The notes under the pieces: model-generated | Database searches by the model: none | What the model was told of the DNA's origin: nothing | Seen by the model: the letters and a program-made list of their open reading frames with translations, nothing else | Shown: piece after piece, positions 2,882-63,501 of the stretch | Position numbering within the stretch: the stretch's first letter is position 1 | Layout: every line of letters starts with the position of its first letter | Made by a program: the position numbers and the translations under genes | Assembly (NCBI GenBank): GCA_964187785.1 | Contig: OZ076420.1 | Location: 55,180,001-55,244,000 of the forward strand | Length of the DNA: 64,000 nt | Source: Amphiscolops sp. MND2022 | Taxonomy: Eukaryota | Direction: 5' to 3'

Positions 2882-2893
2882 GGTGTCCGTGAG

Positions 2894-18411: not shown

Positions 18412-18885
18412 CACACGACGGTTCATCACACAAATCCATCAGCGGATAGGTAATTAACAAGAATTCAAGTGATTAACACCAATTTATAATAGCGCCATGA
18501 TGGTTTATTGAGTGATGATCAGGTTATTCCATCATGGCGGTATGCCTCAGTAAGGCATTTGGCCACGAGTGATACTAATTACTAATTAGTAACACCTCAA
18601 TTTAAGGCTGACTCAAATTAACTTAAGCTGACTCAAGTTGATCTACTAGTAATTGACCTAATCTAATATCTCCTTGTCAACTCGATTGTTCAGTTCACTT
18701 CTCTCTCCAATCTTCTTGCTTTGCATTTCGACCTTACAAACTTTAGAAACAAACTTGCATTTCTAGCTTAAAACTTGGAATTTTCTGAAACTTCTAACTA
18801 CTAGAGTTAGTTTTTACTTTTTAGTAAAATTTGACGTCTTTCTTTCCCTATTTGATTTAATCTACTAGAGTAATCTACTATTAGT
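18412..18885 (+). promoter_or_regulatory. Shared upstream module P, copy 1
   Basis: High identity to ~46905-47415 and ~59410-60146; ends in TTGACGTC...CCTATTTGATTTAATCTACTAGAGTAATCTACTATT just before a coding exon. Promoter role is inferred. Confidence 0.65.
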
Positions 18886-18899
18886 AATTTATCAATCCA

Positions 18900-21214
18900 T
18901 TGGCGGTAAACCCAAATTCCAGAACGCAGTTTTCCAAAATTTTCAAATGTGGCGACCTGGTGCAATGCTTCGAGGAGGAATGTGGACTTTGGCGATCTGC
19001 ATACGTTAAAGAGTTCATCGGCACACACAAGGTAATAGATTTGTGTCAGTTGTGAAAGTTTTTGCTTAATGGTAGATTTTAATGGTTTTTTTGCTTAGTC
19101 CGACTAAGCATTCATTCAGCGTGTTTTTCCTAAAAACAGCAAAATAAGTGAAATTAGTGAAAATAAGTGAAAAATTTTCCGGTCTTTAATCATTAGATTT
19201 GATTGGATGATCATTGGATGCGTGATTATCATGTACGCAAGAATATAAAGTTTAGACCAGGGATTTCAAAGATTCACGCAAAATCATTTCTAAAAATTAC
19301 GCTAAAAATCACCCAAAAAAACTTCTCGCTTAAATTCACGCTTAAATCACGGAAAAATCAGTTCAATACATCATTTATTTGATGGTATAAATTACAATTT
19401 TGATGCATTTCAGCATAAAAATCGTTTGAATAAAAAATACCACACAACATCGCATAGGGTAGATCTAAAATTCTCACACTGTGACTGGAAATCACTTTCA
19501 AAGTGAAAAGCAATCAAAGTGTGTAAGTTAGTGCTAACTTTGACTGTTTTCCACTCTGAAGCATTCGTCATTTCAAATGACGAATGCTTCAGAGTGGAAA
19601 ACAGTCAAAGTTAGCACTAACTTACACACTTTCATTGGTTTTCACTTTGAAAGTTAATTCCAGTCAAAATGAGGACAAGAGGAGTCAATTATTCGTAGAC
19701 ATCGCCTCGTGTTGGTTTAGATGGATGTTATTCGCTTGTCCTGAGGAGTCCTGGTAACTTACTTGTAAAGTAAAACACTTAATTTACCGTAACTAAAGTT
19801 TAAAATTAGGATTTTTCTGACTTTTGTGAGACTTTAGGCTGTGTTGGACATTTTCTGTTCAATGGAGTCCTGGAGCCCCCTTTCCAAATCATCATGATAG
19901 GATTCTTTTTAGGCCAATGTGAAATGGCTGAACTACACCAGCAAGTACGCAGCGGGAGTGATAGAAGCAGCGCCCAAGTTTCGTGAACACCCAGAAAAAT
20001 GGCCCATTCGATCGAATGAAACAAATGCCCCAGGATATGCTAGTAGTCGTAGGGTCGAATATCTCCTCAGTCTCGAAGTTCTGGGCTATATGAAGGAAAA
20101 ACGGGTCAGAAATGACAAAGTTCATTACAGTTGTCGGCAATCTTTGGACAACGAAGGCCCGACCGAACCCGAAGTCGTCAAAGCCTATGTGATCAAAAAC
20201 GATCCTTTTTTGAAAGAAATGCTGGTGTCACCGACGGTAGTGCCACTCAGGGATGGAGAATTTATCGACGATCAGATTGAAAAAATCGAGGTCACAAAAA
20301 TTTCGTATTTCCAGCTGCGGCCTGAAAACTACAAAAAGTCTTCAAGTTTTAGAAAAAAGCGATCATTGACTTTCGTGGACCCTCCGTCTGACACAGACGA
20401 ACTGGAAAGTGCCACTGGTGATTCACTGGCAGAAGATTGTTCCATAAAGTCACCGAGGGTTCCTAAAAGTCAGAACGAGTGCTCCGAGTCGAATTGTCAT
20501 AATACTAAGAGAAAACCACTGGCAAAGATCAGAGTCATCAAGGCACTGAATGGGGGACCATGTGATCCATTTAAAAACAAACCCAATGCACGGACTGACC
20601 TAGTTTGTGTCCCAGTTGCTACTGGAGTGGTAACCAGAGGTGACACCGTGACAATACTGGGGACGACATGGAAGGTGAATGGACTGTATTGGCACGACAC
20701 AAAAGCATTCATCGAAGTAGAAAAAGACGATGACATCTTGTTCAAGTCTACAGTTCCCCTCAATTATGTGCAGAAAGAAACTGAAGTCTTATCCAACAAT
20801 AGCCCTTGCATGCCTCTCTACGAAGAGTATTCGCTAGTCTACTGGGCTTACTCAAACCTCAAGCATCTTTTGATGCATTCCTTTAATGACAAGAGCAGGA
20901 TTAAGGACATCAAAAGAGACTTGGTCCCGTGTACCCCCGCAACCTTACATGCTTTTGGCATTGAAGAAGGCCCAGTAACTTTCAGCATCAAGGAAGAAGG
21001 TCCCTTTTCCACGGCGACATGGGATCACGTGCTGGGAGATCAATGGGATAAAGTGGCTGACGGCACAGCTGTTATCATGACCCTCAGGTTCAAGCAAGAT
21101 AAAAGCTGTGCACTCAACTTCAATACGAGTATCTTTGTTCACGTGACCCTTGTCTCAAACGTTAACTTCAAAACAATGCAAGGGTACCGACTGCACGTCA
21201 AAGAGCACTGTTGA
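18900..21214 (+). CDS. Two-exon gene (18900-19031, 19913-21214; ~477 aa) with N-terminal Tudor/chromo-barrel-like domain; start codon reads TTG
   Basis: Phase-0 AAG|GTAATA donor and TTTTTAG|GCC acceptor join FKCGDLVQCFEEECGLWRSAYVKEFIGTHK to ANVKWLNYTSKY, a Royal-family-like pattern; exon 2 is the 431-aa ORF. Confidence 0.62.
19482..19666. repeat. 185-bp palindrome (92-bp arms, 1-nt centre C19574) inside the intron
   Basis: GTCATTT-C-AAATGAC centre; inner part perfect, a few outer mismatches; arm sequence also occurs unpaired at ~42345-42410, ~55325-55390 and ~58260-58330. Confidence 0.9.
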
Positions 21215-21841
21215 CTACTTCTGTTGAAACTTCTGTTTTTGAAATTTCCCCAAGTTTCTTCTCAGCAAAAGGCAGTCCCCGAATTTCATCAAAGCATTTT
21301 TCAAATTTTCCGAACGTTTGAAAACAATGAAAAAAAATACACAAAAGAAGTGAAGATGCTAGTCTTTATGCTTGCTGATGGAGATAATGTAGCTTACATT
21401 AATCAGTTGAACTCTTGATTGGAATTATGTGATAATTGAATGTCTATTTTGGAAATTCATCCTTTCACCTAATTGACTAGTTATTTTAGAATGGCGTTAT
21501 GCTACACTTGAAAGACAAACACTATATTTGAAGACATTCTGAGACTCCAGAAAAGTGAAATTTCTGATTATTTCGAATGGGTAAATTTGAACTTTTTTTA
21601 CCAATGTCTAGAGTATTGTATTATCTTAGTCTCATTAAAATTGCTATTAGAAAACTGTGATTACAAACTAATTCAATTCTAACTAATTGTCAATATACAG
21701 GGCAAATTGTCAATATAATAGTGAAGCATACTAAAAATTGAAACAAATGTAAAATTGTAAGAGATCATAGAAGAAGGGGGCCCTTTTGACTACCCCCATC
21801 CCCACAGTGGTCTTCTAGCGTCATCCCCTTGACTTTTCCCC

Positions 21842-22304
21842 ACTTGGAAGCAGTAATGACGACTGCAAGTGTTGGTCGTCACTAGAAGTGTTTGTTGAAA
21901 CGGAATATCATTTGAACAACTTGGAAGCAGTAATGACGACTGCAAGTGTTGGTCGTCACTAGAAGTGTTTGTTGAAACGGAATATCATTTTAACAACTTG
22001 GAAGCAGTAATGACGACTGCAAGTGTTGGTCGTCACTAGAAGTGTTTGTTGAAACGGAATATCATTTGAACAACTTGGAAGCAGTAATGACGACTGCAAG
22101 TGTTGGTCGTCACTAAAAGTGTTTGTTGAAACGGAATATCATTTGAACAACTTGGAAGCAGTAATGACGACTGCAAGTGTTGGTCGTCACTAGAAGTGTT
22201 TGTTGAAACGGAATATCATTTGAACAACTTGGAAGCAGTAATGACGACTGCAAGTGTTGGTCGTCACTAAAAGTGTTTGTTGAAACGGAATATCATTTGA
22301 ACAA
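21842..22304 (+). repeat. 77-bp tandem repeat array 1 (~6 units)
   Basis: Unit AACAACTTGGAAGCAGTAATGACGACTGCAAGTGTTGGTCGTCACTAGAAGTGTTTGTTGAAACGGAATATCATTTG. Confidence 0.95.
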
Positions 22305-23335
22305 TGATATTCGATTTTTAAATTTCATCTCAATTACATCAGCTACACACGCGATTTAGTGAAATTCTGGACTGGAAAACGACAAAAGAACGATGAAAAT
22401 TTTACATTATTCAGTGCTACTAGTCGAATAATCATGCTCAATGATGAAGCGATGTAAAAACGATGATCTTTTCAAGAACAAATAAAAGCACAGCTTTTTT
22501 GAATTAAATTTTTGCCCTTCAAAAGCTAATTTCAGCCCGGGCCGAAAGAATAAATCAGTGTCAAGCATTCAAAACCAAATATCTCGTAAACTGTCATGAA
22601 TACAAACATTTGCCAGCTAGAAAAGTTTCTTAGAATTTAATCTAGTTTACAAAAATGTTTGTTTGAAATTTCTGCGACAAAAATTACAAAAGTTAGAAAT
22701 TGCAAATTTTGACAAAGTTTAATCAAATTTGCACTTTTTCTTCATTTCAACAAAGTTGAAAAAAAATTTTTGCAAACTTTTCAGTCAATCATTTGCCCCC
22801 AAATCTCCTGAGGATGCTGATATGATTTGATCGAGAAACTTTTTCGATTCAAATAAAAGTCACCAATTTTCTAAATGCAATTCTTATAGCCTATCTTAAT
22901 ACATGTACTTCAGTGCTCATAGAAACAAAACATAGTGTACATGAATAAAAACACAACGCTATTGCCAAAAGCCACTACAAATACGACTTGCATGTAAATT
23001 GAACAAATACAATCTCTCCGAAGTAGAAATACAAACGAAACATGCATCCCAAAACTGCTCCCATAATGCCCTATCTCGCCACTACATAAACTGTATATAG
23101 AATCACAATCAAAACTCCGTATACTTACAAATTCCTTGGACTTACTGGAAACAAAAAAAATCGGAGAAAAAATTAATTATCCATCGAATTAAAAGATCAT
23201 CAATTCAAATTCTCTCTAACTACAAAATCGAATGGCCAAAAATATCAATACAAGGTAAGCGCTTTGCACTTACTAAACAAAATAAATGTACATAATCAAT
23301 CAAGTTCATAGTCTAACAAATCAAAATAACAATCT

Positions 23336-26300
23336 TCAAAATCTACGTGCACCTCCAATTTCTGGACTTGCAGCTCTACTACCGTCAGGATTCAATCCCA
23401 TCCGCTCATAAACTGACTCCCTATAATCATCCGTCGATAACATTCCGACTTCATCCCACAAGTCGTCCATACTCACTCCTCCGAGTTCAATAGCGCGCAC
23501 CACTGCATCAATACACTCTGCGACCAGACCGTTTGGAATACTGTGTAAACTCCTCAAACCTCGGGATTGACACCAACTCAAAATGGTTCGAATCATGCTA
23601 GATACATTCTCTGACGACAACTGTGGCAGACTAAAATCCACGAAATTGTAGACTCGATTGAAACTACCACTCACACAAAAGGAGATCTGCATCAGTCGGC
23701 ACAACACTGCATCTTTCGATCCATACTGACACAACTCACTCTCATGAGTCTGTAAATCATAGCCTTCTCCATGATCATCCCTGAACTGACGAATGAATCG
23801 CACAAACGACTCAAGCATAGGTATTCTGTCTGTCGCGACAAGGCGTCCTCTCCGCTCCAGCGTTTCCAAAAAACAGCCCATGATCTCTTCCATCTCACTA
23901 ATATTGGCATGCATCAACATATCCGGGCCCCAACAGGCCAAAGCCATGTTAGTCCGATCCGACACCTGAGGCAACTGCAAGAGATTCATAGCAATGGTGA
24001 TGACAAATTCCTCCACCAACGATACAACTCATACGACTCAGGAACTGTACTGTCTTCAGCCACCATGAGACAGAATCGCCGTACCACGTTCAAGATCTCA
24101 CTCACACCGTAAATGCCACGATACAGTCGATCACTAAAAGTTTGCTGCAGTCCTTCCAACACTAAAACAGACAAAGAAACGATGAACAGGATCGTGTAAA
24201 ATTGACGATATCTAACCGATGAAATTCATTAATTAATATCGCGTATTTCAGATTGAGGCTCAAATCTACAAACAAACGATACACAACAGATGAAACCTAT
24301 GCCAAGTCCAACACGCAAACATATCGTTCTACCTAAAACCCCGAAGGCAATAAAACTCATAATAACCGTGCGCGTACACCAATCCCACCACATGAAATTT
24401 GAGTGACAATCCAGCCTCTTCTAGAACTAGCAATTCCATCCGCATTGGATCCACACTGCCTTTCAATTGGTCCAATTGTCTCACAAGGGCGATCAATCTA
24501 TCCCAAGAATTTCGTATTTCTTCCAACACTGCTACGATCTCCCAATTCGATATTTCCCCTGACACTATACACTAAAACAGTCAAACACAAAAACAGTCAA
24601 AATTAGAACGAACTTGAATCCGTCTCACCTCAGCCATAAACTACCCCCCTATCCCTCGAATCAAAGACACAGAACAAAAGGAAAACTAATCCACACTTAC
24701 ACGCACTAATGCAGGACAATCCATTAGAACGGGATCTGCCAGACAATCGCGTAGTTTCGACAACAAGAAATTCATGACCACGTGAACCTCTTGCCCAGAA
24801 AACACAGATAGCCCCGCGGCAGTGATCACACGCGTGAATGACTCGAGACGCACTGGATCCAATGACACACTTCCCCGTCCGTCCTCACCCTCCACCAATC
24901 TACGTAATGCGGGCATTATAGAACAACTGACTCCCACAGGCTCGAGTTCCTCCAACATGACACACCAGTAACTTGCGATCAAGTGCGCAGCTCTCTTTTC
25001 CTACTGTCCAATAGCTCTTACTTCAAATAGAATATATCCACGCAACATGCCCATTTCCGCCACTGTGACAGAACAACGCAACACATTTCGGTCAAGCTCC
25101 ACATAAAATCCAACACGCTTCCCTGCACACAAGTCTGTTGAAATCGAGCGCACCACATGCGGCCAAACTCCGAACACCAACACGGCCTAAATCAATCATA
25201 ACACACACCCTAGTATATATTAAAAACGAGAATAACATAGAAAACCCAATAGTACCATTACAAAAACACTATGAACAAAACACAAGCACATATATACAAA
25301 AAAAACATGTAATTCATGCAACACATGTAAATCATACTTACGACAACGTCTTCTTTCCGGCAACCACCGCTGAACAGGCAATGATACGACACATCAGTAG
25401 TCGCAACCGAATCCCACAGTTGAGTGAGACTCGTGACGTCTCCACCGCGATATAGCGCATCCAGAACGAAACACAAGAAGAGTCTCAAGCTCCGCTCGTT
25501 ATCAGGCACTTTGGGAACACCCGAATCCAGATACTCTCGCCTCTAGCCTCGACCGCAAAAACTTCTCTGACAGAGAAGGACGGACACACCTCAACTTCCG
25601 GCAACGACAAGCCTCTCAGCTCTTCCTCCATCGCAGCGGCTTCAGAAGCACTCATCAACGCTCCGTTCCGTCGACGCAGAAACAAACCACGCCGGGAACG
25701 CACCAAACAGTCTAGCTTGTGGTGTAGGACTCCACGACAATGTGATAAATAGGTCGAGATGCCGCGACTCCCGACTTTCAAGTCGCACTTGCAGAACAGA
25801 CAACGCACATACGCTTCTGATGACCTATGATGTCGTGCGAAGCCCAGTGACATTCCCGCATACTCGTGCTGGAACCAGCTTGAACGGACACTGTTCTTAA
25901 CGACTGAAAACAGAAACTGATGATAAAACGATGAAACCTATCTCACTGGCAACGACACCGGAGAACGAAAATAAAACGCTCTTCTTGCCTAAAACTATGC
26001 AAAAACGATGTTTTCACTTAAAACTGACCTCATGAGTCTAAAATGAAAAACCTAGATGTTTTGCTGAAAAGAAAAGCCAGCTAACGCAAAAAAAGGCACA
26101 AAATCGCCCACAAAACTACAAAAATATTAAAATTACCAAGTCAAACGACTGAACTAAAGTACCTAATGAAGAGTCTCAAACAACAACGTAAGTTAATAGG
26201 TAACGATAACATGTCGGAAATACGGTGAATCACATGACCGTTGAAGCTGTTTAGTTTACCTGACCGAACAAGACGACTACTGGAAGCCACTGCATTGCCC

Positions 26301-27114
26301 AAGGGGGGACTGCCGATGACAGGAACACTTGGCACAGCAACACCACCAGAAGTTTCTGGTCGATCAGCAACACCTACTACAGCCTCTACACTTGAGCCGA
26401 CACTCCTCACTGACCCTTCTTCACTGCTAGAAGATGAGTTGATAACGAATTCTCGCCGCGTCTGTGTGGCAACATTCCGGGGAGCCACCGATTCGTCAGC
26501 TCCACACGCAACAGACACCACCTGACGAATGACAGACCGCTCCAAACCACTCATCTCTCTCGGGACTAAAAACAACAGTATTCATCGTCCCTACATCACT
26601 TGCACAGCCAAGATGGGAAACAGATAAAACGTATGTGATCCGGTCTCAATGAACTAACAAGATCAACACATCAAGAAAACCAAGGCAATTTTGACTTACT
26701 GGAGTTAGCCAGCTCTTCTCGAACTGAGCTCCGCAAATAACCGTCATACCAGCCCAATGACAGCGAACCAAGAGACTGTTGCCAAGGCGTGTACACTGAA
26801 ATAACACTGTGATTGAATACCGATGAATACCGATGGAAGTGATAACTGGCGGTAGACGACTCACTCTGTGGATACATGGGCATAAGAGGATGCTGAATAA
26901 TGGGAGTCTGCACAGGCGGTAGCGGACCCACGCCTGTCAACTCGGTATAGACCCTCTGACTCCCAGACCCAGATGGTGTCATCCATTCTTCACCAGCTAA
27001 ACATAAAACAGAGTACATTACAATTAACCCAAATCCATAACAGCAGTGACGATGAAAGAACGATAACTCACTAAATGGATTCAACTCCTGATATGAATCT
27101 CTATTGTCAGACAT
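23336..27114 (-). pseudogene. Multi-exon pseudogene, paralog A: BED/C2H2-like zinc finger plus putative degenerate hAT-transposase-like body
   Basis: Collinear with 29820-33680 (CLFCKC..HCRGVLHHKLDCLVR; LFLCFVLDALYR; DPVLMDCP; LWDEVG..YRESVY..RAASPE); GT-AG junctions; W->TAG at 25001-25003 and a frameshift ~25530. Confidence 0.65.
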
Positions 27115-27741
27115 CTTGATAATAGCAGGCAGAAACAACGATTGCAATCTGAAAAAATAGAACACGAATGAAGGTAGATGATTAATGACCAATCAATTTG
27201 ATGAAACGAAAACATGGACAATCGACAAATATGATGCCCGTGATATAACGCCGATTCATCTCACAATTTCAAAGGAACAAACAACGTTTCGACTACATCT
27301 AACAATAATCAAATCAAAAAGAGGGAAAATCAGACCGAAAAATTCTTCAAGATTGATGCAAATTATCTATCTCCTTCCACCAACTAGCAGAGGAACTACG
27401 GTTTGACTATAATAATTTACTCGAAATTCAGTGAACAATCTTTTCAAAGTGTTAGATACAGCTGCCAGCGTCGTTAGCAATTGGAATGATTTACACACTC
27501 AGCGGAAAGACCCACTCGAAATTGTGGCTACCTTATTGACCTAATGACTCATTATGATAACTGAACGTTTCCCCCTCGCACACAGTTGGAATTTCTACCG
27601 CAGCCATTCACTCATTATTACGTCACATTCATTCACGCTTGTTCTGAATTTCCTCCAACAGTTCGATGGACATTCGACGGGCCAAGACCTAGAACTGACG
27701 CGTCCAACTTTATCCGAAAGGGGGGTTCCCACGAAGCAGAA

Positions 27742-27839
27742 TATTCACTAAGCCGAAAAAATGAAAGTATTCACTAAGCCGAAAAAACGAAAGTATTTAC
27801 TAAGCCGAAAAAAAACAAAAGTATTCACTAAGCCGAAAA
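27742..27839. repeat. 26-bp tandem repeat x4 (TATTCACTAAGCCGAAAAAA.GAAAG), subterminal-repeat-like
   Basis: Directly visible; adjacent to CAGTGCTA on the minus strand. Confidence 0.8.
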
Positions 27840-29446
27840 TTACGTAGCACTGTATAATTCTCTGCAATCTAATTGGCTGACGCGGGCGGACCGGAACGAA
27901 GTCCGTTCAGAATTTTTTTTAAAAATGAAATTTTCAATTTCCCCCAGTCAGCTATGTTCACATACTCCTAGTGCTACACATACATCGATTTTAGTGCTAC
28001 AATCAGTTGGACAACATCGCTTTCCCATCGCACAATGTACCTTATCTTGATTCGGCTTGAAATTAGTGCGGTATCGAATACTTTCAGCATATTTTCATCT
28101 CTATGGTAACTACTGTCAAATGTGCAGGCAATTTATACATCCATAAAACATCTCAGAAATCCAGTCTTCACTCACAAACTGTTTAATTCCCATAATCATT
28201 TTACTGGGTTCATAGAATATGATATAAAAAAAAGACTCAAGGTCTGTTGGTGATTTAAGAGACACCGCACCTAGTGGTCATTACATACATGAAAATTCAT
28301 ATAATCCAAACGGGAGATGAAAAAGTGATGATTTCAGCCAAATAACTCCTTACAAACATGCAATAATTACTAGCGATGCGTTTGAGATAGAAAATACCAT
28401 CAGAACGCTAATGCAGTCACGTTCATGCTATCATAATACTCTAGCTCGGCTAGAGGATGAAATAGCGATGAAGTCAATCAAAAATACCTTGCAAACATGA
28501 GAAACACTTAAAGAGATGTATTCGCGATGGTATTTTACCATCAACTCAACGACTGAATCCATCGTCACACTAGCACAATACTCTAGCTCGGTTAAAGGAT
28601 GAAAGAACGATGAACCCAGTCCAATCTAAAATACAAATGAAAATTACTCACAAAAGATGTCTTTGCGATGGGAAACACCATCCAAAAGATAATTCATTAG
28701 TCAGCTTTCTATCACAAGACTATAGCACGGCCAAAGAATGAGAAGGCAAATTTTCATGAAAGAATGAAATTACGGAAACAACGCGTACATGAAAACACAC
28801 GATGCCAAAAACAAAACAGGAACATGCAAAATACTCAAAATCCGAAAAAGATGAAAAGAAGATGAACTATACCAAATAACATGTAAAATGTTAGAATTCA
28901 AACTCGCGATGAAAAGACGATGAACCATGCAGATAAAATACATGTAACAACATGCAATGTTTCTTATGTAACGAACGATGTAAAAAGGTGAAAAAGTTGA
29001 GACGTTGCTCGGTCGACTGATGAAAACACGATGAAAATGAGATGAAAAATCAAAAGGGAGCGCTGATCTACTCTACCTACACTTACATGAGATGTAATAA
29101 CGATGAACACCGTGATAAAATCATATAAAAGTTCGTAAACTAAAGAGCGATGTACAAACGATGATAACTACTACTCGAAACACTCAACTGCCTAACAAGA
29201 AATTATTCGCAAAACCTACCTCCCCGTGTTCTCACTCACTAGTATCTCAAGAGAAAACCAATTCGGGTGCCAAATCCTTTAATTTGTACATAAAATGCCC
29301 CACCGAATTTTCCGACGTGGTTTCTTTTTCTTTTTTCAAAGTTATCGTCTCATAAGTTATCGTCACTTAAAAGTGACACACACAGTTGGTCACCCATTCC
29401 AAAGCTATCGTCAATACAAAAACTACAAAATAATAAATTAATACAA

Positions 29447-29780
29447 GCGGACATTACGCCCAAATGTAAATTACGGACAAGGAAATTACGATAATGTAAT
29501 CAGCTATGCTCACATACCCCTAGTACCTTAAATGCAGGAGCGAAGCGAAGCGGAGCGACGTGCCAATGTGGCCATGCCTCAATGTTGCTACTTGGCGAAG
29601 GGAGCGAAGCGACCGAGCCATACAACAAACATGCTAACCTCTTCAAATATTAACCTGAAAAAATCGCTGCTATTCTCTTTGAATAGCCTAATTTGCTTGG
29701 GCGTAATTTCCGTTTGGGCGTAATTTCCTTGGGCGTAATGTCCTTGGGCGTAATGTCTTTGGGCGTAATGTCCTAGAACC
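29447..29780. mobile_element. MITE with TTGGGCGTAATGTC subterminal repeats (longer relative of 48093-48369)
   Basis: Same ...GTCCTAGAACC end and ~15-bp repeats; internal GCGAAGCG-rich core shared with ~46005-46125. Confidence 0.7.
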
Positions 29781-52388: not shown

Positions 52389-52539
52389 TGTCAATGATAT
52401 TCGTAAATTTTCAAAGAAATGAAAAGCAGCCCAGTCCTGTAGTAACCACCGGCTCTCATTGTTTTCGAGTTATTGTCCTTGAGAGTTCCACTGGCAGAGC
52501 TGGTTTGTCAGGATCAAACTTTGCTGAAAAAGCGTGGAC

Positions 52540-53768
52540 CCCATTGCGTGATGTGATGATTAAGGGATTGGGCTAGGTTGATCAGAACAAAAAAGAGTGG
52601 AATAAATGTATTTTCAGCATCTAAAACTAATAGTTCGTAGGCTTCGCCTCGTGTTGGTTTGGATGAGTGCGATACAATTGTTCCACTCAACAAAAAAATC
52701 AAAAAAGAGTTGATGGCTCACAAAAAACCAAAAAAAAAACAAAAAAAACGAATTGGGTTGAGAAACCCACCAAAAACATCAAAAAAGAGTTGATGCAAGA
52801 GCAACTTCATTTTCTCTAGTCAATAATTCGTAGGCTTCGCCTCGTGTTGTATTAGATGGATGTTTTTCTCTTGTTAGGCTCACAAAAAACCAAAAAAAAA
52901 CAAAAAACGAAATGGGTTTCTCAAGTTGAGAAACCCACCAAAAACATCAAAAAAGAGTTGGTGCAAGAGCAACTTCATTTTCTCTAGTCAATAATTCGTA
53001 GGCTTCGCCTCGTGTTGTATTAGATGGATGTTTTTCTCTTGTTAGGCTCACAAAAAAACCCAAAAAAAAAACGAAAAATGGGGCTTAGACAGCTCCAATT
53101 AGGAAACTTCAAAAAATATTGAAAAGTTAAATGGGTCGACAAAAGGCAGATGCATGACAACTCTCGAGTAGCAGCAAAACTTTCGGGTTGCTGCATGGCA
53201 TGCAAAGTATCTTTTCTAACCTACAAACTTTTTGAAAACTTTTGTAATAATGAGAACATACAAAACCCATCTTGGTTTTTAATGAATCTGCTTAAATTTA
53301 GATTAGATTACACTAGATTACCTTAGATTAGATTATAATACATTAGATTAGATTAGAACTTAGAAAAATTGAAAAAAGAGTCGGTCCAAGTTCATCTGAA
53401 TCATCTGTAGTCAATAGTTCGTAGGCTTCGCCTCGTGTTGATTTGGATGGTTCTGATATCCTCGTTCCACTTGCTAAAAAAACTTTGATGAACAAAAAAA
53501 CTAAAAAATGCGAAATCCAAAAAAATGAGAAGTGTCGGTCCAAGTTCATCTTAACCATCTGTAGCCAGTGGTTCGTAGGCTTCGCCTCGTGTTGGCTTGG
53601 ATGGTTGTGATGCCCTCGTTCCACTTGCTAAAAAACGAAAAAATCCAAAATGAAAAATCTAACAAAATGCAAAATCCAAAAAACCGTTTTTTGGGGCCCA
53701 GATAGCGTGTGTCCTCGTCGCGGCCCTGGGTACTGGTGTGACAAGACCAGTAGCAAGAGCGCTATCAA
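52540..53768 (-). repeat. Trailer module T, copy 2 (five hairpin units)
   Basis: AGGCTTCGCCT at 52639, 52832, 53000, 53423 and 53577. Confidence 0.85.
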
Positions 53769-54039
53769 ACATTTTTGTCTGACAGAAAATATTGTTCTTT
53801 TTCCACCACTTTAAATCCAAGGAGAGAAGCAAATGCAAGTCAAAATTAAAGCGATGTTGTTTGTAAAAGTAAAAGTTTTTCCTGGAAAAGAGTTTATTTC
53901 CTCATTGAAATTCCTACAATTTTCAATTTAAATATTCGCTTAGCTTTCTTTTAGATTCACTGTCGAGGTTGAATGTGGATAACGAGTTTGAAGTCCTACA
54001 CGACGACAACTTGTCGAATACGCCCTGGCAGGGCATCTG

Positions 54040-54350
54040 GATTTGTTATTCATAACAATCATCCTAATGACGAATCTACAATCATCCAGACCGATAACGA
54101 CAGATCGATCAACTGGATAATGGCATCGAGACAAGTGCCAATGTCAGTATCAGTGTGCGATGACGTGGACAACAAAGACCGTCATGTCAGTGACTGACCC
54201 CTGTGCAGCCAGTGGCAATCCACCACCCAATCGGACCCCCAACTTGAAACCCACTCCGAAGAGTCTTCAACCACTGGCACTGACCCTTCATCTCAGGCTG
54301 ATCATTTGTCAATTCTTCCGGCCAGTGAACTCTGATTTTGAAAACTGTTC
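54040..54350 (+). pseudogene. Fragment whose 3' half matches the C-terminus of the SET gene (mirror copy at ~37510-37830)
   Basis: QSDPQ..SSTTGTDPSSQADHLSILPASEL* vs QSDPQTHSSTTGTDPSSQTNYLSILPASEL*; 1-nt insertion ~54215. Confidence 0.75.
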
Positions 54351-55981
54351 CTTGGGGTTTATCTTTTAAAATTTTTTTTGGTTCAACGAACTATTGCTAA
54401 TTTTAGTAAATTTAAATATTCAACATTTCCTTTGTTTCGTTCACTATTCGGACTTCGGTTTGAAGTAAAATGCTTTCAAGTTCATTAAGGTTTTTCTTTA
54501 AAAAGCAACGAGGTTTTTGACAAGGTCTTTTTGACCAAAGTCACTCATACGAAGTTTTTCGACGAAGTCTCACTTATCCTACTGTTAAAATTCCATTACT
54601 GACGGTTAAGTTTGACTCAGAAATAGTTTTGAATAAAGTTGATGTCATGCCCGAATAGCATACACATTTCATTTACTACTTTCAAACTTACATACATTTC
54701 AAACTTACTACATGCTAATATGACTGAGACAAACAGTTGTCAAACACATTCATGTCCATTGGGATATCTTCAACCCCGCTTTCATGCCGATTGACATGAT
54801 GTATTTGACAACGACTTGTATAGTCGTCAGAAACTGCAAATAAAGCACAACGCAAGCTAACAAGCTAAAAACTCATGAAATATTTTTACAAGGAAAGTAC
54901 AACCGGCTTATCCAGTCGTCAATTTAATTAAAATCATCACAAACAGTTCATCTGCAACCATTCTTTTGTGTTCATAACTTTTCATTTCCATACCATTGTA
55001 GTATCATGTAGTACATTCAATCCTTGCTGTACTATCAGTAACCAACGTAGTAGTGAGTAAGTTTGTTGCCAATTCATATTTAACCAACTTGGAAAAATCA
55101 GCGCAAGTACGACTGGAACACACAGTCATCAGATTTCCCCTTTTTGAATAAATCCCGTCCTTGAGTGCAATATTCAAGTTTTGGATACGAAACTGATGGA
55201 TGGGGGGAATATAGCACAATATTGACTTTAAAGATTTACCAACGTTCCAAGTATTTAAGGGCAGCGACCGACAAATATTAATACCGCTCGTTTCCCCCAA
55301 TCAGCGTTGATTGCAAGAGAATGATGAATGCTTCAAAGTGGAAAACAATCAAAGTGTGTAAGTTAGTGATAACTTTGACTGTTTTCCACTGATCATTTTC
55401 TCAATGCCGCATGTCCTCCTCGATTACTTTACACCGCGTCAACAGCAAACACAAGTCTAGCATGGAATCCACAAGACGATCCCTTGAACCTTGGCCAAAG
55501 ATCAAGACCGGATCCAAGGACATGAGGCACAAACGATAAAAAACAGATAAAGTATAGTGGATAGGGGCACAAATTAGACTTAGAATGAAAGATTTATCGT
55601 TTTAGCAACTTGAACGTTCCAAATTTTTAAGGAGAAGGTTTCTTCGAGGATCTGTTAACGATAAAAATTTTTCATCGTTTTTACATCGCTTCATCATCGG
55701 GCACGATTATTCGACTAGTAGCACTGAATAATGTAAAAATTTTCATCGCTCCTTTATCGTTTTCCAGAATTTCACTAAATCGCGTGTGTAGCTGATGTAA
55801 GAGATGGAGTAAGGATTCATGTATATTCTGAAAATTCATCGTTTTTACATTGCTTCATTATCGACCACGATTATTCGACTAGAAGCACTGAACGATAAGC
55901 AAACGATGTAAAATTTTTGTCGTTCTTTCATCGTTTTCCCAGGAGTTCCTTGAATCGCGTGTGTAAGTGATGTAACTGAGA

Positions 55982-57617
55982 TGAACAACTTGGAAGCAGT
56001 AATGACGACTGCAAGTGTTGGTTGTCACTAGAAGTGTTTGTTGAAACGGAATATCATTTGAACAACTTGGAAGCAGTAATGACGACTGCAAGTGTTGGTC
56101 GTCACTAGAAGTGTTTGTTGAAACGGAATATCATTTGAACAACTTGGAAGCAGTAATGACGACTGCAAGTTTTGGTCGTCACTAGAAGTGTTTGTTGAAT
56201 CGGAATATCATTTGAACAACTTGGAAGCAGTACTGACGACTGCAAGTGTTGGTAGTCACTAGAAGTGTTTGTTGAATCGGAATATCATTTGAACAACTTT
56301 GAAGCAGTACTGACGACTGCAAGTGTTGGTCGTCACTAGAAGTGTTTGTTGAATCGGAATATCATTTGAACAACTTGGAAGCAGTAATGACGACTGCAAA
56401 TGTTGGTCGTCACTAGAAGTGTTTGTTGAAACGGAATATCATTTGAACAACTTGGAAGCAGTAATGACGACTGCAAGTGTTGGTCGTCACTAGAAGTGTT
56501 TGTTGAAACGGAATATCATTTGAACAACTTGGAAGCAGTAATGACGACTGCAAGTGTTGGTCGTCACTAGAAGTGTTTGTTGAAACGGAATATCATTTGA
56601 ACAACTTGGATGCAGTAATGACGACTGCAAGTGTTGGTCGTCACTAGAAGTGTTTGTTGAAACGAAATATCATTTGAACAACTTGGAAGCAGTATTGACG
56701 ACTGCAAGTGTTGGTCGTCACTAGAAGTGTTTGTTGAAACGGAATATCATTTGAACAACTTGGAAGCAGTAATGACGACTGCAAGTGTTGGTCGTCACTA
56801 GAAGTGTTTGTTGAAACGGAATATCATTTGAACAACTTGGAAGCAGTAATGACGACTGCAAGTGTTGGTCGTCACTAGAAGTGTTTGTTGAAACGGAATA
56901 TCATTTGAACAACTTGGAAGCAGTAATGACGACTGCAAGTTTTGGTCGTCACTAGAAGTGTTTGTTGAATCGGAATATCATTTGAACAACTTGGAAGCAG
57001 TACTGACGACTGCAAGTGTTGGTCGTCACTAGAAGTGTTTGTTGAATCGGAATATCATTTGAACAACTTTGAAGCAGTACTGACGACTGCAAGTGTTGGT
57101 CGTCACTAGAAGTGTTTGTTGAATCGGAATATCATTTGAACAACTTGGAAGCAGTAATGACGACTGCAAGTGTTGGTCGTCACTAGAAGTGTTTGTTGAA
57201 ACGGAATATCATTTGAACAACTTGGAAGCAGTAATGACGACTGCAAGTGTTGGTCGTCACTAGAAGTGTTTGTTGAAACGGAATATCATTTGAACAACTT
57301 GGAAGCAGTAATGACGACTGCAAGTGTTGGTCGTCACTAGAAGTGTTTGTTGAAACGGAATATCATTTGAACAACTTGGAAGCAGTAATGACGACTGCAA
57401 GTGTTGGTCGTCACTAGAAGTGTTTGTTGAAACGGAATATCATTTGAACAACTTGGAAGCAGTATTGACGACTGCAAGTGTTGGTCGTCACTAGAAGTGT
57501 TTGTTGAAACGGAATATCATTTGAACAACTTGGAAGCAGTAATGACGACTGCAAGTGTTGGTCGTCACTAGAAGTGTTTGTTGAAACGGAATATCATTTG
57601 AACAACTTGGAAGCAGT
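55982..57617 (+). repeat. 77-bp tandem repeat array 3 (~21 units) with a 770-bp higher-order duplication
   Basis: Same unit; diagnostic variants recur at a 770-bp offset (56171/56941, 56691/57461). Confidence 0.95.
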
Positions 57618-59139
57618 AGTTATTTTTAGAAACCTTTATTCATGTATTCATATCCCCTGAATTAAGAAAGTTCATCTTATTTTCATTACATAAAAGAGCA
57701 ATTGTGCTGGATTGGTCATTTGAATGTAAATACATCGATAATTTATCGTTAGATTGAAATCGTGCTAGAGTGAATAGTATAGGAAGTCCATCCCTTTTTC
57801 ATCGCTGTATCGAATTTGATGCTGACTTAGTAGAGAATATTGCTAAGTTCATCGTCATTTGAAATTGTGGTGGGGGTAATTAACAGAAAAGATCCAAAAA
57901 TTGTTTTGAAGAGATTCTGGGACTAAACCGAGTGACCTAAACCAACTTGAACCAACTTAAAGCACAACCAACACACATAATACAAAGAACTTATGAAATT
58001 ACCTCAATCCATATATATGTAAGTTCTAATTTGAGTCAGCCTTAAGTTGAGGTGTTACTAATTAGTAATTAGTATCACTCGTGGCCAAATGCCCTACTGG
58101 GGCATACCGCTATGATGGAATAACGGGATCATCACTCAATAAACCATATAGTACAATATTGACTTAAAAGATTTACCAACGTTCCAAGTATTTAGGGGGC
58201 AGCGACCGACAAATATTAATACTGCTCGTTTCCGCCAATCAGCGTTGATTGCAAGAGAATGATGAATGCTTCAAAGTGGAAAACAATCAAAGTGTGTAAG
58301 TTAGTGATAACTTTGACTGTTTTCCACTGATCATTTTCTCAATGCCGCATGTCCTCCTCGATTACTTTACACCGCGTCAACAGCAAACACAAGTCTATCA
58401 TCTTTAACTCAGTAACGCGCTGGAAATAACAAATATGGGAGGAAATTTATCTTTTTTTCATCGCAAACCCAACTGGTGCTGAATTTGGGTGAATATAGTT
58501 GGGAATTCTTCCTCTTGACATACGCTAAAAATCTACTAGTTTTTATCACCTATTCATCCGTGCAATAGAATAACGTTCGATTTTGACTGTATTGCTTGGA
58601 GAATCCATCGCCTTTTCATCGCTTAATGTGTTTTACCTTGATTTGACTCAGTATTAGTACAATAACGATCATTTTCATCATGTTTTCATCTCAGCAATGG
58701 AGAGAGGCTTTGAAAATTTTTAGAATATACTTCAATCCTTACTTCATCTCAGTTACATGTTGAACACGCGATCTATTAGAGAGATTTTAGCGATGTAAAA
58801 AGGATGAAAGAATCCAAAACTTGAATATTGCACTCAAGGACAGGACTAATTCGAAAAGGGGAAATCTGGTGACTGTGTGTTCCAGTCGTACTTGCGCTGA
58901 TATTTGGTCAAATATGAATTGGCAACAAACTTACTCACTACTACGTTGGTTACTAATAGTACAGCAAGGATTGGATGTACTACAGGATACTACAATGGTA
59001 TGGAAATGAAAAGTTGTGAACACAAAATAATGGTTGCAGCCACATTGTATCAATCAAGCCACCACAGTCACACTTTTTATAGATAGATTTAGGATAAACT
59101 TTCTCATTTTCTTGTGTGCGTGTGTTACAACGATGTATA

Positions 59140-60146
59140 AACGATCCTCTTCAAGTGAGAAAATGAGATGCATAAATGGGGCATCGGCTCAGGCCGTAAA
59201 TGCAGTTGAACAAATTCGCTGATGAATTTGCGATGAGTTTTACAGATGAAGTATTAAATACCCTTTTTCAAAATTAATCCGGTGATGGATTTACGATGAG
59301 CTTACGCTTGGCTCTGTCTAATGTCCGCTCATCCGATGAACTTGAATTGGTGTTAATTATCAACACTCGTGGCCGAATGCCTTAATAATAATTAACACCG
59401 TGTGTGGTGACCAATTCAAGTGATTAACACCAATTTATAATAGCGCCATGATGGTTTATTGAGTGACGATCAGGTTATTCCATCATGGCGGTATGCCTCA
59501 GTAAGGCATTTGGCCACGAGTGATACTAATTACTAATTAGTAACACCTCAACTTAAGGCTGACTCAAATTAACTTAAGCTGACTCAAGTTGATCTACTAG
59601 TAATTGACCTAATCCTAATATCTCCTTGTCAACTCGATTGTTCACTTCTCTCTCCAATCTTCTTGCTTTGCATTTCGAACTTACAAACTTCAAATCTTCG
59701 TACCAAACTACAAACAATCTCCAATCTTTCTGCTTTGCATTTCGAACTTACAAACTTTAGAAACAAACTTGCATTTCTAGCTTAAAACTTGTAAACTACT
59801 GAAACTTCTGAAATTTAGAAAGTTTGAAAAAAATTTTGAAACAATTGGAAACATTTGAAGTTTGAAAAATTTAAAAAGTCACAAAACGGTTTTCAAACTT
59901 GAAGGTTTTGAAAACTTGAAGTTGCATTTCTAACATAAAACTTCAAGTAAGTTACAAACTTTAGAAACAAACTTACAAATTTAGAGTTTGCAAAAAAAAT
60001 TGAAAGTGAAAAATTTAGAACCGTTCATTTCTAACGTGACGTTGCATTTCTAACTTAAAACATAAACTTCTGAAAGTTTTGAATCTTCTAAAATTTGACG
60101 TCTTTCTTGGCCTATTTGATTTAATCTACTAGAGTAATCTACTATT
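59140..60146 (+). promoter_or_regulatory. Shared upstream module P, copy 3 (with expanded AAACTT-type repeats ~59815-60090)
   Basis: Matches copies 1 and 2; TGACGTC at 60096-60102; ATG ~99 nt downstream. Confidence 0.68.
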
Positions 60147-60244: not shown

Positions 60245-62635
60245 ATGCCAACTTTTCAAGCGCATGCTTCGTTTACCGTGTCCAATGCTTCATCCTCCAA
60301 TTCCAATTACCAACAAATTCAAAATGTTATTAATAAATTGAACGTTGATGAAAACCCACAACCTCTACATGCACCAATCGCTGCCAGTGTCGCAGTGACG
60401 AGCCACGTGTTACCTCCACCGACCCACGAGTTGCCAACATACGCCGAATCCCAATCGTGCCGAAATTTGCTTGTCCTTCAACCTCCCGGGCCGTCTCCGA
60501 GGGTTGACCAAGTTGACCCGTACGACTTCGTCTCTTCCAGTCTCTCCAATTCCCTCACCCCACCGCCGCGACCATACCTCGACCCAATCCCAGCTCAACA
60601 AACTGACCGCCGCGGTCCACTGACTTCCACTCCTCTGCGCCCGTTGCCGTGTCAACCACATGCTCAACCGACGGACACCTCTCTTACCCCCGTCACACGC
60701 AGTCCCGAGGTGTTTTCGCCCATAGGCACCGGGACTACCGTGGCAAAGATTGACAGAGGCTTGTCGTTGAACGACGAGCAATCAAAAAATATGCAGAAGT
60801 GGGCAGATAGTCGCTCGTACATCGAACACTTGACCAAGGTTGATGCCACGCCTCCGAAAGAAGACTGTCTGCTTGTCTTCCAATGTCTAATCATAATGTG
60901 GTGTTACATTAACAGTTACCCGTCGCGACTCCTTAAGAGGTTCACTGTGTACGACTTTGTGAACATTGTCGACAAAAATAACGAAGACAAGGAATTCGTT
61001 GTCAGTGTACTTGATGGCAACAAGTACAAATATCGAACGGCTTTAAAATTCAACAAGTTTGAAAAACAAGTGATGACATTTTATTTCAAACGTATACGAC
61101 CACTATGGATCAGCGGTTTGAAGTTGTTGAACGATAGTTTTTCTACCTGCATTGATACTATTAGTAACAATAAAATACAAGAAATTACTCAAATTTTTTT
61201 CTACAATTCCAATGGAAACAAACAGCTGAATGTTGCAAGAATTTGTGAAAACTTTCAAGCTAAAATGACGGCGCCGCACAAAAAGTCTAAACCAAAAGCA
61301 TCACTGGATGACAAACTAGGCCCTAGTTCATCCAGTGCTCAAGTCCCGGATCCGATCAACAAAATTTCGAGTCAACAAACTCCTCTGGAAGTGGCTCTAG
61401 TGACATCGGATGTGTTGGAAAATAACGAAAACGTTGATCCTGAACCTAGAAGGAAGCGTTTGTCACATCACGAGCTGATGCTAATTTCCCCCATTTCGAA
61501 GAAACGCTTATTTTACTCAACTGACAACCAGAGCATGTCTGCTAGTTTCAATGCCGTGAAAAAATTCTTCCAAACGCCAAAGAATGTTGATGAGACTATT
61601 CCAACGCCTGCGGAGTGTTGCAACATTATCTGCAAAAACACCAACATTGATTCAAGTTTGGCCAAAACGCTCGGTGAAAGAGTCAATGACCACTTGCGGT
61701 ACAAACTAGTCAATTTGCGAGTTCAGAAATCGTTGAATTTTTTCACTGGAGCAATTCGGCCATCCACAGACGATATAGCGAAGTTTGCACGAAATCGTGG
61801 TTCGTCTGATGTTGCACGAATTGTCGACAAAACGTTCGCATCATGGAAGCCAGCTCCCGCCAGTGACACAAGAAGGTCCACCCGCAACACGCCCCTTGAA
61901 GAACCTGCAGCTGCTCTACCCTCCAGAGGAGTGAACATCTTCTTCTGCAAATCGACGTCTACCATCTGCAACACTCCGAAGGTATCAGAGTACCTCAGCA
62001 GTCAACAATGGCCCTTTCTCCAGGTTTGCGAGAGAATCGTTTTTAGTAACGGTACTTTTGGAAGAGGCGTTGTTACGACAGCTAAGATCTGTGAGTCAGA
62101 AATAGTTTGCGACTATCACACAGATGTAATCGTTACCCAGAGTGTCCTTTTTCAACGGGAAAACACGCAATACATGATGGACTGTGGAGATATTGTTTTT
62201 GACGCCACCTTGGACACGTGCGCCTGTCACCCTGGACGGAGGACGTTCGGACGTCTCCTGAATTACAGACCATCTAACCATCCAGAGTGCAATGTCCGGG
62301 CCAGACGAGTCTCGATCAATGGCAAGCATGTAATTTTGTTCATCGCAAAAAGACCAATCGAAATATTGGAAGAACTCTGTTTCGACTATAACGACCCGAA
62401 ATGTAGAACGGAATTCGGACCTGCAGCTTACGTGCGTTCCGCCGGCGTCACGCCTCAAACGTCAACGGTTTCCCGTTCTGTATTCTCTCGTTTTGAAACT
62501 CCTGAGTCTTTGACCCCTGAGCAGCCAGTGCAATCCACTGCCCAATCGGACCCCCAAACCCACTCTTCAACCACTGGCACTGACCCTTCATCTCAGACTA
62601 ATTATTTGTCAATTCTTCCGGCCAGTGAACTTTGA
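60245..62635 (+). CDS. 796-aa intronless protein: Pro-rich N-terminus, degenerate tyrosine-recombinase-like segment, SETD8/PR-Set7-like SET domain
   Basis: SET at ~62009-62395: FGRGVVTT..EIVCDYH..YMM..DAT..GRLLNY..NV..ILFIAKRPI..EELCFDY. Segment ~60870-61270 (RFTVYDF..FVVSV..YFKRIRP..FFYNSNG) resembles the first half of a YR fold. Confidence 0.8.
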   Translation: MPTFQAHASFTVSNASSSNSNYQQIQNVINKLNVDENPQPLHAPIAASVAVTSHVLPPPTHELPTYAESQSCRNLLVLQPPGPSPRVDQVDPYDFVSSSLSNSLTPPPRPYLDPIPAQQTDRRGPLTSTPLRPLPCQPHAQPTDTSLTPVTRSPEVFSPIGTGTTVAKIDRGLSLNDEQSKNMQKWADSRSYIEHLTKVDATPPKEDCLLVFQCLIIMWCYINSYPSRLLKRFTVYDFVNIVDKNNEDKEFVVSVLDGNKYKYRTALKFNKFEKQVMTFYFKRIRPLWISGLKLLNDSFSTCIDTISNNKIQEITQIFFYNSNGNKQLNVARICENFQAKMTAPHKKSKPKASLDDKLGPSSSSAQVPDPINKISSQQTPLEVALVTSDVLENNENVDPEPRRKRLSHHELMLISPISKKRLFYSTDNQSMSASFNAVKKFFQTPKNVDETIPTPAECCNIICKNTNIDSSLAKTLGERVNDHLRYKLVNLRVQKSLNFFTGAIRPSTDDIAKFARNRGSSDVARIVDKTFASWKPAPASDTRRSTRNTPLEEPAAALPSRGVNIFFCKSTSTICNTPKVSEYLSSQQWPFLQVCERIVFSNGTFGRGVVTTAKICESEIVCDYHTDVIVTQSVLFQRENTQYMMDCGDIVFDATLDTCACHPGRRTFGRLLNYRPSNHPECNVRARRVSINGKHVILFIAKRPIEILEELCFDYNDPKCRTEFGPAAYVRSAGVTPQTSTVSRSVFSRFETPESLTPEQPVQSTAQSDPQTHSSTTGTDPSSQTNYLSILPASEL

Positions 62636-62689
62636 TCATGTATTTTGAGCTTCGAACCGTCGAAAATTGCGCAAACATTCTCCGTCAAG

Positions 62690-63501
62690 TAATTAGGATT
62701 AAGTGATTGGGCTAGGTTGATCAGAACAAAGAAGAGTGGAATAACTGTATTTTCAGCATCTAAAACTAATAGTTCGTAGGCTTCGCCTCGTGTTGGTTTG
62801 GATGGAGCGATACAATTGTTCCACTCAACAAAAAAATAAAAAAAGAGTTGATGGCTCACAAAAAACCAAAAAAAAGACAAAAAAAACGAAATGGGTTGAG
62901 AAACCCACCAAAAACATCAGAAAAGAGTTGATGCAAGAGCAACTTCATTTTCTCTAGTCAATAATTCGTAGGCTTCGCCTCGTGTTGGTTTAGATGGATG
63001 TTTTTCTCTTGTTAGGCTCACAAAAAACCCAAAAAAACGAAATGGGTTTCTCAAGTTGAGAATCCCACCAAAAACATCAAAAAAGAGTTGGTGCAAGAGC
63101 AACTTGAAAAAAGATTCGGTCCAAGTTCATCTGAATCATCTGTAGTCAATGGTTCTTAGGCTTCGCCTCGTGTTGACTTGCATGGTTCTGATATCCTCGT
63201 TCCACTTGCTAGAAAAACTTTGTTGAACAAAAAAATTAAAAAATGCGAAATCCAAAAAAATGAGAAGTGTCGGTCCAAGTTCATCTTAACCATCTGTAGC
63301 CAGTGGTTCGTAGGCTTCGCCTCGTGTTGGCTTGGATGGTTGTGATGCCCTCGTTCTACTTGCTAAAAAACGAAAAAATCCAAAATGAAAAATCTAACAA
63401 AATGCAAAATCCAAAAAACCGTTTTTTGGGGCCCAGATAGCGTGTGTCCTCGTCGCGGCCCTGGGTACTGGTGTGACAAGACCAGTAGCAAGAGCGCTAT
63501 C
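62690..63501 (-). repeat. Trailer module T, copy 3 (four hairpin units)
   Basis: AGGCTTCGCCT at 62778, 62970, 63158 and 63312; homology to copy 2 stops sharply after GAGCGCTATC at 63501. Confidence 0.85.

Follow-up and report, generated by a model that had tools for sequence, protein, structure and literature searches.

Shared non-coding blocks around SET, BRCT and orphan genes in Amphiscolops sp. MND2022: a probable nest of multi-gene RAG1/Transib-like DNA transposons

Transposases of the RAG1/Transib type lie at the root of V(D)J recombination, in which the partner protein RAG2 reads chromatin via its PHD finger, a property that bears comparison with the chromatin-enzyme partner described below. 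The elements of the CACTA group are large multi-gene transposons with repeat-rich regions beside their genes, and they resemble in this respect the element considered here. We have analyzed a stretch of 64,000 nucleotides from Amphiscolops sp. MND2022 (GenBank assembly GCA_964187785.1, contig OZ076420.1, positions 55,180,001 to 55,244,000 of the forward strand), hereafter called the window, in which the same non-coding blocks recur around different genes. These blocks are abbreviated as P (upstream of genes), T (on their 3' side) and X (spacers), and the genes include those of a putative RAG1/Transib-fold transposase with a C-terminal BRCT domain, of a SET-domain protein and of a third, orphan protein. 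The interpretation that we favour, with moderate confidence, is that rearranged copies of a single family of large multi-gene RAG1/Transib-like DNA transposons, hereafter family A, form a nest in the region between 16.5 and 64 kb.

By fold, the closest relatives of the predicted transposase are RAG1 and Transib, within the broader CMCT clade (CACTA/EnSpm-Mirage-Chapaev-Transib; PMC12730594), with which it also shares the feature that the RAG1-like enzyme is detectable only by structure-level comparison. The ESTA transposases, too, have been detected only at the level of structure, and elements of the CMCT clade have 5'-CA..TG-3' tips and target-site duplications (TSDs) of 2-5 bp (PMC12730594). 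The same source reports DNA transposons that carry a SET gene, namely HarbingerS and MuDR in Phytophthora, together with TET/JBP-carrying transposons in fungi (PMC12730594). All these resemble the present element in that a DNA transposon lineage retains an epigenetic enzyme as a stable accessory gene, for which a part in opposing or directing host silencing has been proposed. They differ from it in their transposase lineage and in their hosts, the host group here being probably animal-like, whereas in the window the SET protein resembles KMT5A and is accompanied by another conserved gene and by a transposase with a BRCT domain. Pack-MULEs, Helitrons and CACTA captures likewise present varied genes between the same non-coding blocks, but their genes are fragments of host genes that vary from copy to copy, whereas here the gene set is conserved across diverged families and P and T are not the termini of the element. 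Within the library that we searched, we found no paper that brings Transib and BRCT together, none on an element of RAG1/Transib type that has SET or Tudor partners, and none that mentions the accession of the sample.

The protein that carries this interpretation is encoded at 47489-52388 on the plus strand. The two open reading frames (ORFs) that an initial sequence-only reading of the window had labelled 'Transib/BRCT' form, together with a short upstream ORF, a single gene of three exons (47489-47657, 48807-49912 and 50556-52388; ~1036 codons), of which they constitute exons 2 and 3. All exons are open, the GT-AG introns between them preserve the frame, natural homologues run on from exon 2 into exon 3 without a break, and intron 2 lies at the same codon in the sister family (family B) that is presented later. 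An exhaustive HMMER search recovered homologues in 189 clusters; the full-length ones measure 850-1300 aa and show ~33% identity. One of these homologues, P0058, was modelled with AlphaFold2 (AF2) on an alignment that included the exons of the window (pLDDT 81.9, pTM 0.73). When the model was compared with the PDB using Foldseek, the top 49 matches were all to the RAG1 core, to BbRAGL (the RAG1-like protein of amphioxus) or to HzTransib (from Helicoverpa), with E values from 3e-8 to ~1e-3, 560-790 aligned columns and TM scores by target of 0.38-0.56, with one exception; the P-element transposase came next, at E 4e-3. The RAG1/Transib core fold is therefore present in the model of this 33%-identical homologue aligned with the exons of the window. 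Its acidic residues fall on beta-1, behind beta-4 and within a late helix. Invariant columns of the family are a pair of D residues on strand 1, a further D beyond strand 4 and two blocks, D-x2-H...E and E-x2-E-x3-H. None of these residues (D/D/D-H-E/E-E-H columns) is lost from the copy in the window, and no other copy among those read has both exon 2 and exon 3 open. The modelling thus predicts the product to be a DDE-type transposase of RAG1/Transib fold. The Transib label stands at the level of fold, as far as the model can indicate, and fails at that of sequence or profile similarity; membership in Transib is unproven. The mobilizing enzyme, which the sequence-only reading had not been able to name, would be the product of the 'Transib/BRCT' gene itself.

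The C-terminal BRCT domain (~51864-52193) is similarly apparent from its fold. Modelled alone with AF2 (pLDDT 82), the product of exon 3 matched in Foldseek the BRCT domains of Lig4, XRCC1 and REV1 with probability 1.0 and TM scores by target of 0.6-0.75, whereas its Pfam BRCT_2 score of 21.7 bits falls below the cut-off of 27.3; 7 of 40 members of the transposase family matched BRCT_2, the best at 1.6e-6. The earlier BRCT assignment is consequently upheld by structure while remaining under the Pfam threshold. Apart from BRCT, Pfam returned nothing for the transposase, and exon 3 taken alone yielded BRCT only in Pfam, PDB and AF2 comparisons, the RAG1-like fold emerging just with the full-length homologue. 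As far as the homologues looked up can show, only metagenome and raw-read assemblies without annotation have yielded this lineage: the 10 long homologues (among P0046-P0081) come from ENA, JGI or Logan assemblies, on contigs of 3-11 kb, and none of the 10 has a full-length member in NCBI or UniRef. (The introns of the gene contain palindromic inserts similar to miniature inverted-repeat transposable elements [MITEs] and clusters of 15-bp repeats, at ~48093-48330 and ~50000-50300, and the same is seen in the intron of the 'Tudor-like' gene at ~19487-19655.)

The second gene (60245-62635, plus strand) encodes an open protein of 796 aa with a SET domain at ~62060-62392, which scores 43.9 bits in Pfam against a cut-off of 22.4 and has KMT5A/SETD8 as its best match in the PDB, the NH motif pairing with NH and EELcFDY with EELlFDY. 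The earlier reading of this domain as a chromatin enzyme is borne out, and its assignment as a SET domain of the lysine methyltransferase type, judged by score and motifs, is solid. The companion label of tyrosine recombinase is not sustained, because the N-terminal 600 aa of the protein have no Pfam match at E <= 10, of phage-integrase type or otherwise, and PDB matches are confined to the SET domain. A word-based homology search with words from the first 500 residues, hence excluding the SET domain, retrieved only the protein's own cluster.

The third gene lies at 18888-21214 on the plus strand and consists of two exons, the second at 19913-21214, separated by a GT-AG intron; the join is confirmed by the relative P0037, which reads straight through it. 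We retain for it the term 'Tudor-like' as a label only, since neither exon 2 nor the contiguous relative P0037, which includes exon 1, gave a Pfam match at E <= 10 or a relevant match in the PDB. The copy of the window lacks a start codon, its one break, and is otherwise open; an ATG is present in three of five copies. The claim that the genes between the blocks, apart from the start of the 'Tudor-like' gene, are uninterrupted frames holds for the SET gene and for the 'SGNH' ORF introduced next, whereas the 'Transib/BRCT' frames turn out to be exons and the 'Tudor-like' gene is split in two and without a start.

Two further ORFs accompany these genes. The 'SGNH' ORF (39352-39942, minus strand) encodes an open, multicopy protein of 196 aa, whose relatives share 43-97% identity and form clusters with 1 to 15 members; the name finds no support, as there is no Pfam match at E <= 10 and the only PDB match is unrelated (E = 0.18). 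An ORF of 220 aa follows the SET gene and its T array, starting at 63702 on the plus strand and extending beyond the end of the window at 64000, to continue up to position 14120 of a compared locus (L001). It accompanies the P-SET-T unit where present, with gene calls in L001, L009 and L010, and has no credible Pfam match.

When compared with ProtoRAG and other RAGL systems, the partners of the putative transposase are therefore different: a SET protein and orphan proteins, one of 196 aa, without matches to Kelch or PHD domains, hence no RAG2-like gene. With respect to Transib and RAG1 themselves, the present element has no similarity in sequence or profile, possesses a C-terminal BRCT domain, extends over tens of kb with at least three genes, their own putative promoters and internal satellites, and has shown neither RSS-like termini (recombination signal sequences) nor 5-bp TSDs. 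The likenesses are the predicted fold of P0058, which matches RAG1 core, BbRAGL and HzTransib over 560-790 columns, the placement of the acidic residues and, as in ProtoRAG, the company of a partner gene.

To evaluate the arrangement of these genes we used the contigs of ENA assembly ERZ25074608, in which the window is part of the 854-kb contig ctg185869 (~104x coverage), and compared it with 11 loci (L001-L011) on six other contigs of the same assembly. The four gene families, namely transposase, SET, 'Tudor-like' and 'SGNH', recur together on one handful of these contigs. Of special value in this comparison is L011, a 42.6-kb contig of the same genome that contains a sister family, family B, at 50-63% amino acid identity and with DNA similarity only inside exons. 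Its transposase, SET and 'Tudor-like' genes all lie within 10.3 kb. Of the first two, each is fragmented into three or more ORF pieces; the third is open. No P-like or T-like blocks are shared with the window, and different tandem arrays follow the transposase and SET genes. Moreover, the contig of P0058, which derives from another sample, has the transposase beside divergently oriented ORFs, one with a weak match to SET. Since the three genes lie close together in a diverged family devoid of P and T, and transposase and SET also in another sample, they appear to be ancestral components of the element rather than captures, and their linkage predates P and T. Homogenization in the family of the window, recent and specific to it, then accounts for the sharing of these blocks.

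These results bear directly on the earlier proposal that P and T form a fixed expression cassette, through which a gene-capturing element or family shuffles unrelated host genes as swappable cargo. Such a proposal accounts for the presence of P and T around unrelated genes, for T adjoining also the 'SGNH' gene and the 220-aa ORF, for the SET gene occupying the place of the transposase gene in L002 and L008, and for T replacing the satellite behind the 'Tudor-like' gene in L007. It is nonetheless hard to reconcile with the linkage of the three main genes without P and T, with that of transposase and SET in the other sample, and with the failure to detect a host-gene parent for any of these genes, which are all multicopy orphans. 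In addition, no termini bound the P-gene-T unit, and the breakpoints of re-pairing fall inside shared blocks or at microhomologies, as expected of recombination and deletion. We consequently regard captured cargo as quite improbable.

The blocks themselves were located by self-comparison of the window, tandem arrays being defined with TRF (Tandem Repeats Finder); P, T and the 77-bp satellite recur where the sequence-only reading had seen the same non-coding blocks around different genes. P measures ~0.4-0.75 kb and is present upstream of genes at 18411-18795, 46619-47363 and 59147-59824, with 96-98% mutual identity. Its proximal end is a 53-bp motif that includes TGACGTC and starts at 18830, 47361 and 60094, thus exactly three times in 64 kb against zero expected, and each time 40-100 bp before the start of a gene. 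With the motif included, all on the plus strand, P1 spans 18411-18882 (96-97% identical to P2 and P3; motif at 18830-18882 with 0 mismatches), P2 spans 46619-47413 (motif at 47361-47413) and P3 spans 59147-60146, in which ~265 bp of extra short repeats precede the motif at 60094-60146. Across all 11 loci the motif was found only upstream of these gene families, one locus having no detectable motif. P is probably a core promoter plus 5' untranslated region. Partial cores of P occur in inverted orientation, on the minus strand, at 40446-40647, where the core is antisense to the 'SGNH' ORF, lacks the 53-bp motif and is 95% identical to 58245-58042, and at 58020-58245; the 'SGNH' gene has no P in sense orientation beyond this inverted partial core. 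A scan of JGI metagenome contigs gave 0 matches for the P core. As side observations, P2 contains nested inverted repeats at 46840-47073 (arms of 32 nt separated by 170 nt, and arms of 15 nt separated by 25 nt), and the two inverted partial cores adjoin two satellite arrays.

T is a tandem array of three to eight units, depending on the copy, of ~155-190 bp each, with a conserved 24-bp motif per unit, and follows four genes. Across the 11 loci these arrays are found only directly 3' of gene stops, the exception being a solitary motif in the intron of the 'Tudor-like' gene. The array behind the transposase gene occupies 52558-53766 (five units with the motif) and extends with its 'tail' to 54591, while that behind the SET gene has four units at 62697-63501, both on the plus strand. 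An inverted array plus tail lies at 37318-39198 (minus strand; T units at ~38102-39198 with five motifs) and is 97.6% identical to 54550-52771. The description of T as a hairpin trailer does not survive this analysis: an 11-bp hairpin is present in just one T unit, the trailers of three of the genes fold no better than shuffled sequence, and the single remarkable hairpin is a near-perfect palindrome at ~39250-39362, with a stem of ~51 bp (-85.7 kcal/mol, z = -19), which overlaps the stop of the 'SGNH' ORF. The T motif, like the P core, gave 0 matches in JGI metagenome contigs. Relics of the SET gene, corresponding to its last ~34 codons at 77-84% identity, are visible in the tails after T at 54195-54336 and 37533-37673, behind the transposase gene and the 'SGNH' ORF respectively; this suggests that the T-tail block spread from the SET unit.

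The 77-bp satellite forms three arrays, of 6 units at 21842-22304 (plus strand), of 14 units at 40662-41766 (inverted, minus strand) and of 21 units at 55982-57618 (plus strand), the first varying from 6 to 17 units between loci. The third is preceded by the X spacer (55044-55968, plus strand), of which an inverted copy with 96.6-99% identity lies at 41766-42690 on the minus strand. The apparent inverted duplication of 37318-42690 with respect to 52771-57085 keeps the order of its blocks, with each of the two blocks inverted, and is most readily understood as an [X-satellite]-[gene-T-tail] arrangement that recurs on the two strands.

Comparison of the loci provides an explanation for the impression of a cassette with exchangeable genes. 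In L002, L008 and L010 the region upstream of P2 is joined directly to P3 and the SET gene, so that 46870-59147 is missing with breakpoints inside P; L008 also shows a SET-T-SET-T tandem, and the 'Tudor-like' gene of L007 has T behind it where the window has the satellite. A deletion of 20.6 kb, with 2 bp of microhomology at its junction, has removed 29221-49842 from L003 and cut short its transposase gene. L004 lacks 58285 to ~64389, with a junction in MITE-like sequence that shows microhomology and no TSD. (A palindrome related to the MITE-like inserts of the introns sits at this 58285 junction.) Apparent cassette swapping is thus explained by deletions plus unequal recombination or end-joining at the near-identical P, T and X blocks.

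The same copies inform on decay and selection, and consequently on the possibility that the region is instead a cluster of host genes, in which a domesticated RAG1-like nuclease, a SET enzyme and their partners would have undergone segmental duplication plus gene conversion of their regulatory regions. Clusters at 90% identity contain 4-15 members, and full-length copies account for 5 of 15 for SET, 5 of 8 for 'Tudor-like', 2 of 7 for transposase exon 3 and 1 of 4 for exon 2. The SET gene has ratios of non-synonymous to synonymous variation (pN/pS) of 0.3-0.6, and of 0.3-0.4 between subfamilies (binomial p = 5e-4 and 1.5e-6), which would fit a host gene under purifying selection, as would the spliceosomal introns and the common promoter-like blocks, the long collinear stretches between contigs and the absence of detected terminal inverted repeats (TIRs) or TSDs. 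The 'Tudor-like' gene is weakly constrained (pN/pS 0.14-0.65). Conversely, transposase exon 3 is unconstrained between copies (0-2 synonymous vs 10-18 non-synonymous changes) and truncation or splitting affects many copies. A single genome contains diverged paralogous families, those of the 'Tudor-like' gene at ~50% identity, with 22-121 members per 90% cluster, and the contig of L011 has a coverage of 177x against ~100x for other contigs. Furthermore, homologues elsewhere are uninterrupted ORFs of 1000-1300 aa on short contigs. On this balance we deem a host gene cluster unlikely.

The multi-gene transposon that we favour could have produced the present organization as follows. The genes of the family itself would be at least three, namely those of a ~1000-aa RAG1/Transib-like DDE transposase with C-terminal BRCT, of a KMT5A-like SET protein and of the third ('Tudor') protein. 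Each may have acquired a copy of P and most also a copy of T at the 3' side, with X spacers and 77-bp satellites separating the gene units; unequal recombination between the near-identical blocks would then have deleted, duplicated and re-paired these units, producing the look of a cassette with varied cargo. Movement may be of the cut-and-paste type, driven by the RAG1-like DDE enzyme, in which the BRCT domain could couple either excision or integration with the factors of DNA repair. Action on chromatin at or around the element would fall to the SET protein and perhaps also to the third one, and the shared motif of P might allow co-ordinated expression of the element genes.

Several observations weigh against this interpretation. 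No TIRs, TSDs or clean filled versus empty sites were found for the element or any P-gene-T unit, and outer boundaries were equally missing from the window, the flanking loci and L011, whose flanks show no termini. The comparison of left and right flanks for possible termini returned only the inverted copy of P, and the start of P shares no inverted repeat with the end of T, so that no inverted termini bound the P-gene-T unit. Given that element ends, TSDs and an empty site have not been found, we can only infer mobility, and do so from the fold of the transposase, the number of copies and their decay, and the presence side by side of diverged families. Collinearity between several contigs extends over more than 20-55 kb, and some 'copies' may therefore be haplotypes or segmental duplicates instead of independent insertions. 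Families A and B do not agree in the order and orientation of their genes, and one contig (L007 plus L010) has 'Tudor-like' and SET genes with no transposase in the parts read. As to the enzyme, the evidence for its fold derives from the 33%-identical homologue P0058 and not from the protein of the window, and no match to RAG1 or Transib was obtained at E <= 10 against all PDB chains with either phmmer or a 35-sequence profile. Finally, the C(2)C / H(3-4)H signature of the CMCT clade (PMC12730594) is not present as such; the transposase family has instead C-x-C (conserved at 47% and 72%), an invariant D-x2-H and then H(93%)-x2-E-x2-E-x3-H(100%), in a placement comparable to that of the signature but with different spacing. 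The broader claim that the region is mobile-element territory is upheld.

A further step would be to consider these elements as an undescribed lineage of RAG1/Transib-fold transposons, at the level of superfamily, in which the BRCT-bearing transposase co-evolved with the SET methyltransferase and a third partner; this we propose as a tentative and rather doubtful extension. If true, such a distant lineage, in stable company of a histone-methyltransferase-like gene and with a BRCT domain of DNA-repair type, would widen the range of RAG1/Transib-type elements and show, for a second time and independently, a RAG1-like cutter teamed with a partner directed at chromatin, a natural parallel to RAG1-RAG2. 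The few DNA transposons on record with epigenetic enzymes would also gain an example from an animal-like host. In more general terms, identical flanks around different genes can stem from homogenization plus unequal recombination in a multi-gene element and do not imply capture.

The window comes from a metagenome assembly, in which repeats could have been collapsed or chimerized to give a mosaic that is not a real locus. In accord with such an artefact, there is an N gap at 15041-15240 and an odd palindromic junction of ~50 bp at 16416-16512. The arrangement is, on the other hand, reproduced piecewise on independent contigs at 98-99% identity: L005 and L006 cover 16460-36833, L002 and L008 cover 38754-42690 plus 44329-46870, and L009 covers 49206 to beyond 64000. 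An assembly origin of the whole arrangement is, in our judgement, very remote. The left shared segment (16460-22827, plus strand), which includes P1, the 'Tudor-like' gene and the first satellite array, is collinear with L003, L005 and L006 at 98.5-98.8%. Collinearity starts at 16460; to the left of this point the window diverges from the three contigs, while these stay collinear with one another for at least 6.5 kb further. The palindromic junction, ~1.2 kb after the N gap, is located exactly where collinearity ends and represents either a rearrangement breakpoint or an assembly seam.

Viral readings, whether of a giant-virus type with its promoter and hairpin rule or of a polinton, were considered and discarded, since no capsid, polymerase or packaging genes were seen and matches to viral Pfam families were far below threshold. 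Rfam and tRNA scans of the window gave nothing.

The remainder of the window is occupied by other repeats. An unclassified repeat with ORFs on the minus strand (22828-28179), which is unrelated to the three-gene element, constitutes a 5.35-kb insertion/deletion polymorphism, being present in the window and L005 and absent from L003 and L006; contig comparison revealed no clear TSD or TIR at this site, and its ORFs have no Pfam matches. A second, diverged member of the same repeat follows at 28180-36833 (minus strand), which resembles the former at the protein level, is collinear with L006 and has as sole domain hint a weak BED-finger-like match (zf-BED, E = 0.028, below cut-off). Near copies of the element in other loci there are host-like genes, namely a Kringle-domain protein and a JmjC-like fragment (L008 1-780 and L010 4218-4580). 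They are the sole clues to the nature of the host, a Kringle domain being a sign of an animal or of a close relative of animals; the GT-AG introns and the retrotransposon at the left end likewise give the window a eukaryotic appearance. The leftmost part of the window (1-11000, minus strand) contains a Gypsy-type long terminal repeat retrotransposon, with zinc-knuckle gag, aspartyl protease, reverse transcriptase-RNase H and integrase distributed over at least six adjoining ORFs.

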